DNA of 64,000 bases from Blepharisma stoltei ATCC 30299. Lineage: Eukaryota; Protista; Ciliophora. The position numbers were made by a program, and so were the translations under genes. Positions 14,467 through 55,268 of the stretch are shown in pieces; position 1 is the stretch's first letter; each line of letters starts with the position of its first letter. The notes below the pieces were generated by a model, which was given only the letters and a program-made list of their open reading frames with translations, was not told the DNA's origin and did no database searches. The stretch lies in NCBI GenBank assembly GCA_965603825.1, contig CBFDEM010000021.1, forward strand, positions 62,001-126,000, written 5' to 3'.

Positions 14467-14935
14467 AATGAAAAATAAAATATGATTTAATTCAAAATAA
14501 TTAAATAGTAATTTTGTATAATTATAAAAGTTAAGGTTTATCTCACTATAATAAATAAAAATCGATATAGCTTAAACACAATTATTTAATTCATAATCTG
14601 TGAATATAAGGGATAAGCTATAATAACAAGTTAAATGTTTCAATTTTTTTTGACTCCTATTAGATTTTCTTAAGGGTATTATTATAGAACATAATGAAAT
14701 TAACCTAATGCAACCTAAATAAATTTGCAAATAGCTTATATAATCATTTAAAATTGCTACTACAAACAGCAATGTGCACAATTTCTAATATATTGCCTTA
14801 ACAAGTCTATTGAAAATCCGCATACCGCATAATATTTTAAATAATAGCTTTATAGCCCAATCTAAGCAAAAATAAATTTAATATTAAATCCACAGCTAAA
14901 TGATTATTTAAAATTAGCAAAACATTTATTCAACG

Positions 14936-17206
14936 ATGAGGATAATAGTTCGCTACCTAGAGCAAAATATTGAACTAATCGTCGACGCTAATGCTAAGGT
15001 CAAAGATCTTCAATTAGAAATCAGCAGAATCACCTCAATACCTCCAAATTTGCAAAAATTAAGTTTTCTTAATTCAGGGAATAAAGTAAAAATAATATAG
15101 GCATTCCTCCCTTCTTCCTCCAAGCTGTCCTATTACAACATCAAAGACCGCAGTGTCTTATTTCTCGAGCAAGTAATTTCTACATAGAAAACCATTGATA
15201 ACCCTCAATCCCCTGACGAGGACGTCCGCATTGTCAGAAGATACTCCCACCAAGCTTCCCAAGACGAAATTGGGACTATTTATCAAGAACAAAATGCCCA
15301 TAGAGCTATGAGCTATTGTTATGAAAGCGAAAATTCAAATAACCTCGCTGAATGGGTCACCAAAGCTGTTATTGCTTGTAGAGAAGGCAATGCAGAAGGC
15401 CTAATAGAGACTTTACAAGACTACCAGGTCTGAAGAGGCAGCAAGTTACAAGAAGAAGATGTAGGAGAGCTTTTAAATAGTCCTTATAATGGCCAATGAA
15501 GCTGCATTCACTATGCCTGCTATATGAATCATGTAAATATTCTGAAAGAGCTATTAGAACTTGGAGTAAACTGTAATAATATTACTGACGACCAATGGAC
15601 ACCTTTGCAAATTTCAGCTTACCAAGGGAATATCCATTGTGTAGAGCTTTTATTGGCACATCCACTTATACAGATTAACTTAATGACTGCAGTTAGAGGG
15701 TCAGCCCTACATATGGCAGCTGTAAGAGGGCATTTTGAGATAGTCAAACTCCTATTAGAAAATAAAGCTGATATAGGATTAGAAGACCCTGATCATAAAA
15801 CTGCCCTGGAACTGTCTTCTGATAGAAAAATTGCAGAATTGATCCCTAAATATAACGGAGTAAAAATGCTAGAAAGGTTTGGCCAGAAAAATTATGAAAA
15901 ACCGCTAGGGTTTTGTGGAGAAGTTTGGAGCACTGGGACATGGCATATAAACGATAAAATTGTGTTTTTGATACTGGACTCAGAAAAAGGCAAATTTATG
16001 CATTATGATCAGAGAGATTCATATATAGAAGAAAAGCAGCCTGAAATAACAGTGCCTTTTGAAGATATCACGAAGGTGATTGCTGATGAAGTTTTAAATG
16101 ATAAATACTTTTTTTCAGTTATAACAAAAGATATTACCTTGAAATATTATACACAGTATCAAGATATGACTGAAGAATGGACCAGAAGGGTTGACTGATG
16201 CATAGTCTATTTTCACCATGAAGCCAGACTAAAAAATGCCAAAGCATTTACAGTCCCAAAAAAAATTCCAGTAAAATCACAGAAAAAAATTGTATATGAA
16301 GAAGAGCCATATGAAAATATAGGAGAATCTGCAATTAAAAAAAGCAGCTTTGAAATATTAGGGGAGATTGGATCTGGAAGCTTCGGAAATGTATATCAAG
16401 TAAGGAAAAAAGATTCAGGCGAAATTTTTGCAATGAAAGCGCTGAGTAAGCCTATGCTGATTTCGAAAAATCAGCTGAAATATGCGGTGGCTGAGTGTAA
16501 AATATTGAAAGCCATTAAATTCCCATTTATTGTTAGGCTTTATTGAGCCTTTCAATCACAAAGCTACCTTTATATGATATTGGAATTCTGCCCAAATGGC
16601 GACTTTTCCAGTCTGCTACAACTAGCTGGCCATTTATCAACAGAAGTCGCGAAATTTTATATCGCAGAAATGATTCTTGCTATTGAATATCTCCATTCTT
16701 TTGATATCATTTATAGAGACCTCAAGCCTCAAAACTTGCTGCTGGACAGTGAAGGGCATATAAAACTGACTGATTTCGGCCTTTCTAAAGAAAATGTTTC
16801 AGACAATGAGCCAGCAATGTCTTTTTGTGGGTCTCCTGCTTATCTACCTCCTGAAGTTTTAGCACAAACTGGTTGTGGGAAATCAGCTGATATATATAGC
16901 ATTGGGACTAATTTATATGAAATGCTGGTAGGAAAGCCTCCGTTTTATACAGAAAATGTAGCTAAGCTTTACAAAAGAATTAGTAAGTCAAGCATTAAGT
17001 TTCCTGAGGATATTAATGAAGATGCGATGGATTTAATACAAAAAGTTATGGTAAAAAATCCTGAGGAGAGGCCTTTTATTCATGAAGTCAAAGCACATAG
17101 ATTTTTTGAAGGGGTGGATTGGGATAATATGCTGCAAAAAAAGATGACACCTCCTATCAATATAAAAAATCTAAGAAATCTACGATCTTCACATGTGATT
17201 TCTTAG
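14936..17206 (+). CDS. AGC-family Ser/Thr kinase with ubiquitin-like, ankyrin and PH-like domains (~746 aa, 2 introns)
   Basis: Ubl-like MRIIVRY..KVKDLQLEISRITSIPPNLQKL..KLSYYNIKDRSVLFL, ankyrin repeats (WTPLQISAYQG, SALHMAAVRGH), PH-like end EEWTRRV, and kinase motifs GSGSFG, FAMK, YRDLKPQN, DFG, SFCGSPAYLPPE, FFEGVDW. Confidence 0.9.
15086..15100 (+). other. 15-nt intron (gtaaaaataatatag)
   Basis: GT..AG, A at -6, phase 0 with in-frame TAG. Confidence 0.85.
15173..15187 (+). other. 15-nt intron (gtaatttctacatag)
   Basis: GT..AG, A at -6, phase 0 with in-frame TAG. Confidence 0.85.
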
Positions 17207-51171: not shown

Positions 51172-52346
51172 TTTTATAGATGGTATTGCATTTTATGGCA
51201 CTCAAATCATAATTTTTTGAGATCATGATTGTCAGAAATAGTGAAAGACTGCTTAGATGGAGGATCTTCTAATAATGTTTTACTAAAAATAATTTTCCTT
51301 TATGTGGTCTTCTGCTGCATAATAACTTAAATATATTTAATCTTATTAGAATTGCGATGGCTGCGTTGTAAGTGAGATATTTTGTAAAATCTCTTGTCTT
51401 TTTTGACGTATTCTTGAGGATTGCAAAATTCTAGTAATTTCTCTGAGAATTCCAAAGTAGCGGACTTCTAAGATAAAATTCAAATATTTTATATTTAAAA
51501 ATCACATACGGTAAATCTTTCGTTCCAACTGTCTCCTCATCATTAAATCACCAATGAGCTGGTTTCATTTCTTCTATATTATAGCATTAATTGATAATTC
51601 AAAAAGTTATCATATTAGAAACATGATATTAATAAGTTTAGTAGTGAGTGCTTAAAAAATTTTATTCCCTCTCTTTTCCTGCGACATATTAATTATTATA
51701 AAAATCAAATCATTTATACCATAATTTTATTCTTCGCTTTTTTTGAGGGGAGGAGTGCACATCCATAGATGATTTTGAAGGAAAATCAGTTTAGATTATG
51801 ATTTGGGTTAGAACAGTAAATACCACAATTTTTCTAGTATTGTTTTAATAAATTTACTCAAATCTTAAATATTTAAAGACAGACACGTAAAAATTTCCAA
51901 AATTGGTCTAGACTCTGATAATTATAGACCATTTTTATAATAAAAATGGGCTAAGATATTGTTTTTATAACTATTCTTTCTTAAAAACAAAAGAGAGTAT
52001 AAATATTTTAACAGTTTTTGATATTTTTGAGACAATCTTGCTCGCTCAATCAAAATTTATTTTACATCTACAAATATTTAATTTAAAAAATTATATGTTA
52101 TAATCAAGAATTCAAAAATTTAATCTAATAACTCACCCCTTTTTCGAGCGGGCAAGGCTTCTTGGCTTGCTCTTAAAGGCCAATAAAATTATATATAACA
52201 AATTTTGTATTTTTAGCAAATATCGATTTTAAACGAAAAGAAAAATCTATAATATCTATTATGCTTTAGAATTCTAGCTGTTTATATTTACTATAATCAG
52301 CAAAAGATAACGCAATAGCAATTATTGACTATTTAAAACTTATATA

Positions 52347-53225
52347 ATGAAAATGAATTTATTGCGTCGAATGATTTTACCTCCATATCCTTATCACCTA
52401 CATCCTAAAGCAATCATCCAAGATCTAGTTGACTTCCCTTTACAATTCTACTCAAGAGACCTCGCTTTAAAGAATATGGATAGATCTTTAAACATTTTTC
52501 ATGCTAAAATGCTAAAAGAAGCAGGGCATCGCTGCAGATTATTCTTATCTTTACTTGCAAATAATAAAATTCAAGACTTAGAAGATCTATGTGAGCTAAA
52601 CTTGTATAAAAAAATCAAAAATTCAATAGCATCCTTCAAAGGCCAAGGATACACAATTAAATCAATTGGAGACATAGAAAAATCCAAAACAATATATTTA
52701 GGGAGCACCAAATATATAGGCAATTTGCTTCCTTATCGAAACTTAAATTTGCCAAAATTCAACTATAAATCTCGTCGATCTAATATACCTATTTTTCGCA
52801 GAGCTGTTGAATATTATTATTTTGGGGTTTATTATAAGCTTTTAAAATGATATAAAAATCCTGGCTATGACGGTAAAATTTACTCGCTTGACTTGAAGCA
52901 TCTTAATACACTAGATGATATATCACCATTTGAAGATGATTTAGAAAATCTAAGAAACGCCTTGGACTTTAAATCAATTACGATGTATGTTTTGGACGTA
53001 GGCTTTACTAGTTCCTTTAAACTGCTAGTAGTAGACAAAGATGGGAATATTGTGGAAGGAGAAGAAAATCCAGAAAAATTAGAGTTTCACTCTTTCAGAT
53101 TAGAAAAGGTCATAAATAATAAATCAAGAGCTGAGTGAATGAAATCGAATTTTAAAGGAATTTTAAATGAATTTATTATTAGTGATGTAGATGGATTGAT
53201 GGATGGAAATCCATTTACTAAATAA
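52347..53225 (+). CDS. Hypothetical protein, possibly Tim44-like domain (~292 aa)
   Basis: Two track ORFs plus a tail joined by TGA. IQDLEDLCELNLY, LLVVDKDGNIVEG and FIISDVD resemble Tim44-like domains; tentative. Confidence 0.62.
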
Positions 53226-53460
53226 GATGCGTCTCTAAGAGGATAAATTTTCTTTTAAAGTTAGGAATTTCACTATATATTGATCTATGGGAGCTAGAAA
53301 AAAAAATTTTAAAAAGAAGAAATTTTTGAAATCATTTAATTAATAATTTATGGCTGATTTTGAAATAATAAAATAAGAAGAAAACGAAGCTTTAAGTCTC
53401 TGTAAAGGAGATAATAATAAAGCATATGATTTTTTTCGAAATAAGCTTATAGCTTTTAGT

Positions 53461-53790
53461 AAACCAGAGCACCAGATTGTCTTTTTACCCATTGGGGAGA
53501 TGATTGTCCTAGTTAGAAAGGGGTCATGTGTGGCCGCTTGGTCTTAAATTCCCCAATGCGATACCAAATGTTATGTCCTATGTAGTTTTCATTTTGTCGA
53601 CAACCAAGTTAAAAATTTCATATTTTGAATTTTCTGATTGACGGCTTGGTGACCAAGCGTCCCTGACTCACAAATGGTGAGTGCTAATCCGTAAGGAGCA
53701 ACATAGCGGAAGGATGTATCCAGGCTGACAAGTAAGTTGCAGAGCGTTATGTAGAGGAGAGTAGTATCCTAAAGGGTATTTCCCTATAAC
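53461..53790 (+). ncRNA. Candidate structured non-coding RNA of unknown family (pseudoknot plus multiple helices)
   Basis: About 42% GC by hand count versus about 20% in the adjacent spacer. No convincing ORF. Two crossing perfect 9-bp helices plus further stems (see findings). Boundaries and strand are approximate. Confidence 0.5.
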
Positions 53791-53793
53791 TAA

Positions 53794-54114
53794 TTAAGTA
53801 AGGTCAAGTCTTAGGGCTTTTTTTCTGAATCTTTCAAACTCAAATATTCTTGAAGATAATTCGTTTTTCATAATTATAGCAGCAAGTTGTGAAAAAATTC
53901 CAAGAAGCTCTTTATCATTGTTTTCTTCTCCGCCTGCCATATCAGCTACTACTCTAAACACTTCTTTAATAGTCTCAAAACTTGACGATCTCAATATCTC
54001 TGCAGCAGTTTCCTGGATAAATTCTCTTATTTTTTGCTTGGGGGCGTTATTTTCTGATTTCATCGAAAGTTCTTTAAGAATGCACGAAATAATTCCGTAT
54101 AGTTCATCTTCCAT
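53794..54114 (-). CDS. Stand-alone paralog of the N-terminal domain of the FHA protein (106 aa)
   Basis: MEDELYGIISCILKELS..KIREFI..LLGIFSQLAAIIMKNELSSRIFEFERF aligns with MAEELCGIISCILNELS..KTREFI..LIRVFSLLAAFVTRNELISRIDEFEDF (gene at 51171). Confidence 0.75.
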   Translation of the reverse strand: MEDELYGIISCILKELSMKSENNAPKQKIREFIQETAAEILRSSSFETIKEVFRVVADMAGGEENNDKELLGIFSQLAAIIMKNELSSRIFEFERFRKKALRLDLT

Positions 54115-54581
54115 TTTTTATTATCTATAATTATAACTACAAGATATAATAAGACCTTAGGTAAATTAAATAATCATTATAAGGAGATTTATTTATGAAA
54201 AAAATCGGACTATTTGTGTCGGCATGCTGTGTAGGGAATGCTAATTATCTTGAAAAGGCTTGATTTAAGGTGTATTATGAGTATTAAGGTGTAGTAATAA
54301 AGATCTCAACAAAAAGAATTCAGTGTGATTTGAGGCTTTTTGTTAGATTTTATAGATGTAAATCAATTTTAATATTTCGGTAAACTTGAAAATCTTCACT
54401 AAACTTAAATAAGTTATAATAAAGTTGGGCTTATTTATTTAGATTTTACCTAAAGTTGCTATTAAGCTCATCTCTTCTTATTAGTAATTCAAATTTTTGA
54501 TTCTCTCACAATATCACAATTAGATCTCTTCAAAAGTCTCAGAAATCTAATTTCATTTATTATAGCTTATTTATAACTATT

Positions 54582-54977
54582 ATGCATAATAAAAATATGA
54601 CTGAAAAAGAGCTTTATTGCTCTGAGTCACGAGAATTATCCAGAGACAAGCGATATGAATATTTTTTAGAGTTCATAAACAAATCAAGGACTATTTCTAT
54701 GGAATTCAGAAATGACAAAAAGCAAATCCGAAGCAAATTGAAGCCAACTTTGGAATGGTCTCAAAGGATATTTGGGGATATTTTATTTGGGCTTGGGTAT
54801 GGGTATATGCTCAACAATTGAATAAAATCAAGAAATATATATTTTTTCACAGTAGGAGCTTCGCTGGCGGTTTTTAGTTATTATGATTATGAAAGTGACA
54901 AAATAACCAAATACAAATTAGCTGAAAAATATGAAAAACTTGCGCTGGATTATCATTGCAAGAAATTCAATAAGTAA
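54582..54977 (+). CDS. Hypothetical small membrane protein (~131 aa)
   Basis: ORF reads through TGA 54819 to TAA 54977; two hydrophobic segments. Confidence 0.62.
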
Positions 54978-55268
54978 ATAATTATAGAAGTAAAAAATTC
55001 ATAATTTCGAAATTTTTGGTATTTTAAGATAGATTTTTGATGCTTTTAGTTTTGACTAATAATTAATATAAATTAAAGGTAGACAAGATGATAGTTTGTT
55101 ACATTTGGGACAATTTAAAGCTGATTATTTTAAAGTGACTTATAGAAACCTTGGTTATATAAAAGAAAATTTTTTAGTAATCAGCGAAATAATTTACATA
55201 GACATGCTTTATTTTAGTTTTAGACATTTTATATTTTATTTCATAGCTTCCGATTTATAGAAATATAA

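Follow-up and report, generated by a model that had tools for sequence, protein, structure and literature searches.

Why should some 330 unusually GC-rich nucleotides lie between two convergent protein genes of an AT-rich ciliate genome, and do they encode RNA? The island in question (positions 53461-53790 of the 64-kb stretch of DNA that was analysed, hereafter the window) was described in an earlier note, made from the letters of the DNA, as one RNA with several domains and a pseudoknot, perhaps a ribozyme, and of no recognised family. The RNA annotation of Blepharisma stoltei comprises only tRNAs, rRNAs, SRP RNA, and spliceosomal RNAs (bioRxiv 10.1101/2021.12.14.471607). The snoRNAs and lineage-specific RNAs of this organism are largely uncharted. 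In AT-rich genomes, RNA genes classically show up as GC-rich islands, a signature reportedly put forward by Klein, Misulovin and Eddy in 2002 and also used in work on Plasmodium and Dictyostelium.

Genomic Setting

The window is MAC DNA of B. stoltei, the assembly of which comprises 41.46 Mb in 64 contigs and in which UGA is read as Trp; translation with the bacterial code gives only short ORFs in the window, and reading UGA as sense gives ORFs of up to 2697 codons. The earlier note's suggestion of Blepharisma is thus correct, and it is with eukaryotic RNA classes that the island should be compared. The genome is 66% AT, with an intergenic GC content of 0.17-0.30. The flanking genes converge, as the earlier note had them (Table 1), and the island sits between their 3' ends, 4 nt past the stop codon of gene B. 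Both encode orphan proteins, each of which matched itself alone among 5.8 billion proteins, and the product of gene A belongs to no Pfam family above the cut-off.

The exact gene B protein is also found on contig CAJZBQ010000021.1 of GCA_914767885.1, a public contig that is near-identical to the window and is the sole other contig with both flanking proteins. The island sequence is identical in the two; insertions nearby differ, and none falls inside the island. The public contig (1.23 Mb) contains two stretches that the window lacks: 206 nt inserted at window positions 54929-54932, MITE-like in their long terminal inverted repeats, and 89 nt inserted at 55174-55176. It also diverges from the window left of 51444. 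From its sequence the contig appears to represent this locus in a germline-inclusive (MAC+IES) form.

Table 1. Features of the island and its flanks (window positions) and structural RNA genes located elsewhere in the genome (contig:positions)
Feature	Position	Strand	Details
Gene A (upstream flank)	52311-53225	+	Code-4 ORF with UGA=Trp codons; 284 aa in the public record
AT-rich spacer, gene A to island	53226-53460		GC 0.234; no USE-type promoter element inside
GC-rich block 1	53461-53560	+	GC 0.47; 9-bp helix 53490-98/53550-58 around an inner hairpin
CGCTTGGTC, 5' strand of the proposed crossing helix	53535-53543	+	Pairs locally in the MFE fold
AT-rich internal spacer	53561-53639	+	GC 0.253; T4 runs at 53586, 53592, 53623, and 53630
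GC-rich block 2	53640-53790	+	GC 0.477; no T4 run inside
Gene B (downstream flank)	53794-54117	-	Orphan protein, 106 aa; coding-like codon usage
T7 run	53818-53824	+	28 nt after block 2; within the last gene B codons, on the opposite strand
SRP (7SL) RNA	C18:120757-121049		122.6 bits
RNase P RNA	C18:415074-415307		83 bits
RNase MRP RNA	C31:54778-54979		106 bits
U3 RNA	C32 and C18		
U1 RNA	C29 and C18		

Composition and Anatomy of the Island

The compositional step reported in the earlier note is real, the GC content being 0.421 over 53461-53790 versus 0.234 over the 235 nt immediately upstream (53226-53460). Measured per 200 nt, the island reaches 0.42, more than any other non-ORF gap of the window: maxima elsewhere range from 0.17 to 0.39, and a called 67-aa gene adjoins the region with 0.39. 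The island is bipartite, with two blocks of 47-48% GC placed around a 79-nt spacer of 25% GC, and the GC content of the blocks (0.47-0.48) lies within the range of 0.44-0.52 observed for verified RNA genes in the same genome. G and U are more abundant on the + strand than on the - strand, and it is the + strand that carries the GUAA loop.

Block 1 contains a box-C-like GAGAUGA at 53497-53503, without a box D. Block 2 contains a palindrome, GCTTGGTGACCAAGC (53644-58), the hairpin ACTCAC/GTGAGT (53666-82), a UCC-GUAA-GGA hairpin (53688-97), and a branched element closed by ACATAGCG/CGTTATGT (53701-52). The spacer between the blocks has a TAAAAA stretch at 53608-53615, and a T5 run lies at 53482 on the + strand. 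The T7 run downstream of block 2 is a possible Pol III-type terminator. The SRP and RNase P RNAs of B. stoltei have no internal T4, and the MRP RNA has T runs only at both ends of the match; T5 and T4 runs do occur inside U3. The T5 run and the four T4 runs on the + strand make one Pol III transcript over the whole span unlikely.

A span of 125 nt holds three occurrences of the heptamer GCTTGGT or its complement, the perfect 7-1-7 palindrome of block 2 included. This palindrome has four other sites in the genome, each with one mismatch and two of them within long ORFs (>570 codons), and no comparable island was seen at any of the four; the palindrome was thus rejected as a recurrent genomic motif.

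Helices and Folding

All of the helices listed in the earlier note occur in the sequence where it placed them. CATTGGGGA and TCCCCAATG (53490-98/53550-58) form a perfect 9-bp complement, as do CGCTTGGTC and GACCAAGCG (53535-43/53651-59), and the latter helix crosses the former. The ACCAAGTT/GGCTTGGT and ACATAGCG/CGTTATGT stems were both recovered by a stem scan, ACTCAC/GTGAGT and TCC-GTAA-GGA both appear in predicted folds, and ATGATT..CCT/AGG..GGTCAT is found in the sequence. The alternative partners on which the earlier note based a switch are likewise there: CTTGG/CCAAG occurs four times in the island and allows alternative pairings, a pattern that the GCTTGGT repeats and the palindrome produce.

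At least two Watson-Crick stems of 9 bp were found in one of 300 dinucleotide shuffles of the island. Among natural sequences, two 9-bp stems are present in 3% of the 330-nt segments of the 64-kb stretch with a GC content of at least 0.38, and in 12% of all such segments. Stems of 7-8 bp and stems that include G-U pairs are not enriched in the island over its shuffles. Above genomic background the helices are therefore only marginally supported, and they are unremarkable for a pick from 64 kb.

The folding energy gives no further signal. The MFE z score over 370 nt is -0.44 for the + strand and -0.37 for the - strand, and over 330 nt it is 0.0; sub-blocks score between -1.1 and -2.1, with -1.5 for block 1 and -1.25 for block 2. 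Control RNAs of the same genome, treated by the same method, gave -3.4 (SRP), -2.5 (RNase P), -2.8 (MRP), -1.5 (U3), -3.0 (one U1), and -0.2 (the other U1), i.e. values between -1.5 and -3.4 in five of the six. The earlier note itself had named a folding energy no better than that of shuffles as evidence against its proposal, and this is what is observed for the island (z about 0). The single pseudoknotted, multi-domain RNA or ribozyme accordingly lacks support from the fold, and the bipartite GC profile and the T4 runs in the spacer also speak against it. The broader idea of a novel non-coding RNA fares differently: the island is non-coding, compositionally anomalous, and outside any known family, and it is the proposed pseudoknotted architecture that is unsupported.

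Coding Potential

Coding-like codon usage is absent from every frame of the island. In codon usage, no 240-nt segment that avoids gene B reaches the 5th percentile of genuine coding sequence, and a frame-free local best-frame score of 0.07 is below that of 103 of 103 coding chunks and within the range of both ncRNA and intergenic DNA. This low score argues against a decayed CDS, a reading that was rejected on codon usage and best-frame score together. With the bacterial code the island holds no ORF of >50 aa; if UGA is taken as Trp, open frames extend to at most 83 codons on the + strand and 70 codons on the - strand.

Searches for Promoter Elements

An upstream element (USE) of the form [AG]TCCC[AT]TA at -56 to -65, combined with a TATA-like element at -26 to -32, precedes all six canonical small-RNA genes tested (RNase P, SRP, U3a, U3b, U1a, and U1b). 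In the RNase P and SRP genes the USE (GTCCCATA/ATCCCTTA) is at -64/-65 and the TATA element at -32; in the U1 and U3 genes the same USE forms are at -56/-58 and the TATA element at -26/-29, and the RNase MRP gene has only a variant, TTTCCATTTA. This difference in USE-TATA spacing may distinguish genes transcribed by Pol III from those transcribed by Pol II.

Near the island, neither exact matching nor a position-weight matrix detected a USE above chance on either strand. The best USE-like sites of the island score at chance level (top 0.3-1% of all positions), and no matching TATA element accompanies them. No B box (GGTTCGANNCC) occurs in the island with up to two mismatches allowed, and an MRP-type AATTTCCAT signal is represented by a poor match at the 3' edge of the island, with no TATA after it. 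Elsewhere in the window, an exact USE (ATCCCTTA) is present at 14607 on the - strand, in a 616-nt non-ORF gap (14572-15187); the DNA downstream of it is AT-rich and runs into an ORF, and the match is probably due to chance.

Copies and Homologues

The island has no paralogue in the 41 Mb of the genome, either by blastn or with two covariance models built on predicted folds. One model covers 53660-53756 and the other block 1, and each matches nothing in the genome but its own segment of the island. The island is thus not a recent duplicate awaiting decay. A scan of metagenomes with a 20-mer gave one match, in unrelated coding DNA and attributable to chance, and blastn against a plasmid collection gave no match to the island. 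These searches found no copy or homologue that could show covariation.

Known RNA Families

Rfam was searched with the whole window at the gathering score and, at E <= 10, with three pieces of 801, 201, and 201 nt. The earlier note's statement that the island belongs to no recognised family holds: no family matches it, and at E <= 10 there are only snoRNA-like matches at chance level. The hallmarks of group I introns, RNase P/MRP, and telomerase RNA are absent, as that note had also observed. Group I introns, for which the covariance model represents the P3/P7 core, gave no Rfam match; RNase P RNA (RF00009, with CR-I/CR-V and P4 in the model) gave none at the gathering score or at E <= 10; and the RNase MRP model (RF00030; CR-I of the form GAAAGUCCCC, and CR-V) is without a match in the island. 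The bacterial RNase P and tmRNA models are not applicable. ARAGORN detected no tRNA-like gene in the whole window.

The U1 and U3 RNAs are both located elsewhere in the genome (Table 1) and show no similarity to the island; a U1-like reading of block 1, in which UUUUUACC is followed by a GGGGAGAU helix, was discarded because block 1 has no similarity to the U1 genes of this genome. The second U1 gene (C18:451628-451788) scores 55.9 bits, below the Rfam cut-off, and has a canonical USE/TATA promoter. Its 5' end is altered (TCAATTACAATGG, compared with TCACTTACCTGG in the main U1), and judged from this sequence it is possibly a variant U1 with different 5' splice-site pairing.

The telomerase RNA model RF00025 has no match anywhere in the genome. 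Heterotrich telomerase RNAs have been found through the USE RTCCCWTA and a CCCTAACA-type template, both of which are defining (Fajkus et al., 2021, PMC8287931). A search of both strands of 53001-54200 for a template (a CCCTAACA permutation plus 1 nt, as 9-mers and as 8-mers) found none, and hence the island is not a telomerase RNA.

For the snoRNA families, the snoZ101 C/D match to block 1 is weak (14.7 bits, E 5.8, against a gathering score of 44), and box C/D snoRNA was rejected on this sub-threshold score and on the missing box D. For the H/ACA pattern (hairpin, ANANNA, hairpin, and ACA 3 nt from the 3' end), inspection by eye shows AUACCA after the block 1 hairpin and ACA at 53599 as possible elements; the second hairpin consists of five A-U-rich pairs with a 19-nt loop, and there is no Rfam H/ACA match.

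SRP RNA (RF00017 clan), which is characterised by Alu and S domains and a helix 8 GNAR loop with an AGCA motif, likewise gave no covariance-model match to the island at E <= 10. The island and the SRP RNA of the genome have 22 7-mers in common; for 580 GC-matched control segments the number averages 7 and does not exceed 20. The common words, of 7-10 nt, include AGGGGTCATGTG, GGCTTGGTGA, GGAAGGAT, and CAAGTAA. Island positions 53505-53535 have GTCCTA..AGGGGTCATGTG.GG in common with the SRP RNA, where AGGGGTCATGTG is at the helix 5/6 junction; a local alignment of the two sequences covers this junction of helix 5 and helix 6 and is reached by one of 300 shuffles. The common words are not collinear, and the excess, taken at the level of sequence words, may be chance or may reflect an old, scrambled relationship. 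Tetrahymena G8 RNA, a 7SL-like Pol III stress RNA, is a precedent for an SRP-derived paralogue.

Interpretation and Alternative Explanations

The island is a genuine orphan non-coding sequence, present in single copy and outside known RNA families. With no source copy in the genome and no coding relic, its compositional anomaly is hard to explain without constraint. On these grounds we tentatively favour a selectively maintained non-coding locus that encodes one or two lineage-specific stable RNAs; its transcription, strand, transcript boundaries, and function are what we infer from the features described above. There would be two + strand transcription units, not one 330-nt ribozyme-like RNA. 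The first unit, of about 100 nt, would comprise block 1, beginning near 53488 and ending at the T4 runs at 53586/53592; the second, of about 180 nt, would comprise block 2, beginning near 53640 and ending at the T7 run at 53818. The AT-rich spacer would then act as terminator of the first and as TATA-like promoter region of the second. This arrangement is consistent with the absence of T4 runs from both GC blocks, each of which is then followed by T runs, and with TAAAAA about 32 nt before block 2, which may be compared with the TATA element at -26 to -32 of U1, U3, SRP, and RNase P, although T runs and TATA-like features such as these are at the level expected by chance in AT-rich DNA. What speaks against RNA genes is a folding energy like that of shuffles, compared with z scores of -1.5 to -3.4 in five of the six control RNAs, and the failure to find a USE on either strand, a B box, a tRNA-like gene, or a homologue.

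The compositional anomaly leads us to favour orphan RNA genes over a non-transcribed or functionless sequence, a somewhat unlikely but serious possibility in which the island would be a compositional relic (an old RNA-gene fragment or foreign DNA) or an element acting at the DNA level, and its helices chance inverted repeats. An MFE z of about 0, the lack of enrichment in 7-8 bp and G-U stems, the presence of two 9-bp stems in 3% of GC-matched segments, and the failure to find a promoter of the known small-RNA type all fit such a sequence; the GCTTGGT repeats and the 7-1-7 palindrome would equally suit a protein-binding DNA site, and the excess of SRP words could mark a scrambled fragment of an old SRP gene. 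However, GC-rich blocks (47-48%) of 100-150 nt should be lost to decay unless youth or constraint preserves them, the genome holds no source copy and no coding relic is visible, the palindrome is not recurrent, and the SRP words are not collinear. A doubtful reading, to which we give little weight, is the one closest to the earlier note: a single + strand RNA of about 330-365 nt with the pseudoknot, a three-way junction, and a CTTGG/CCAAG switch, representing a new ribozyme-like or RNP family. Both 9-bp helices are indeed perfect and sterically compatible, with connecting loops of 36, 6, and 92 nt, two such helices occur in only one of 300 shuffles, CTTGG/CCAAG is present four times, and no known family matches. 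Against this stand a bipartite GC profile with an intergenic-like spacer, the + strand T runs (one T5, four T4) in the path of a whole-span Pol III transcript, the want of a thermodynamic signal, local pairing of the 5' pseudoknot strand in the MFE fold, the failure to find a promoter or a homologue, and helices that are not significant when 64 kb has been scanned for them. The more specific form, in which such a + strand pseudoknot/switch RNA of about 330-365 nt would found a new heterotrich-specific family, possibly SRP-derived like G8, is slightly less probable again.

Two further explanations involve protein genes. The island begins 4 nt past the gene B stop and lies between two 3' ends, and an independent promoter was not found, as would suit a gene B 3' UTR (- strand) that is long, constrained, and equipped with regulatory or localisation elements; gene A is the less likely owner of such a UTR. 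The UTR reading is improbable in view of the description of UTRs in the B. stoltei genome as tiny (bioRxiv 10.1101/2021.12.14.471607), the loss of the G-U pairs and the GNRA loop on the - strand, and a - strand MFE z of -0.37. A small protein gene missed by annotation, or an exon interrupted by introns of the 15-16 nt usual in this genome, could make use of the 83-codon (+) and 70-codon (-) frames that are open with UGA as Trp, but is very unlikely: codon usage is non-coding in all frames, no ATG-initiated ORF exceeds 50 aa, no GT..AG mini-intron that bridges stops was seen, and the public record has no called gene at the island.

If the island is transcribed, one or two orphan RNAs would be added to those of an early-branching ciliate, and GC-rich non-coding islands would become usable as an RNA-gene finder in the B. 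stoltei genome. If the island is not transcribed, it would be a rare case of GC-rich DNA retained between convergent genes for a reason at the DNA level.

Comparison with Known Systems

The proposed fold resembles RNase P/MRP in its size (about 300 nt) and in its pair of crossing helices; unlike in those RNAs, the first helix of the island closes 6 nt after the crossing 5' strand, leaving no specificity domain between. Block 2 with the T7 run, at about 180 nt, is near the size of ciliate telomerase RNA, in which the proposed pseudoknot would also have a counterpart, whereas the island is without a template and without the RTCCCWTA USE on either strand. The terminal stem of block 1, directly followed by GAGAUGA (6 of 7 positions of RUGAUGA), recalls a box C/D snoRNA; in contrast to such RNAs, the island has CUUA, not CUGA, beside the 3' stem, so that no k-turn is possible. 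Contrary to what is expected of an SRP RNA, no Alu-domain UGUAA motif was seen in the island and there is no USE promoter.

The closest parallels are the unclassified, lineage-specific small RNAs of AT-rich genomes, such as the Plasmodium RUFs and the Dictyostelium class I RNAs. In contrast to these, the island has a folding energy that is not below that of shuffles, and no promoter was found for it; the likeness lies in a non-coding, single-copy block with an RNA-gene-like GC content far above that of intergenic DNA.
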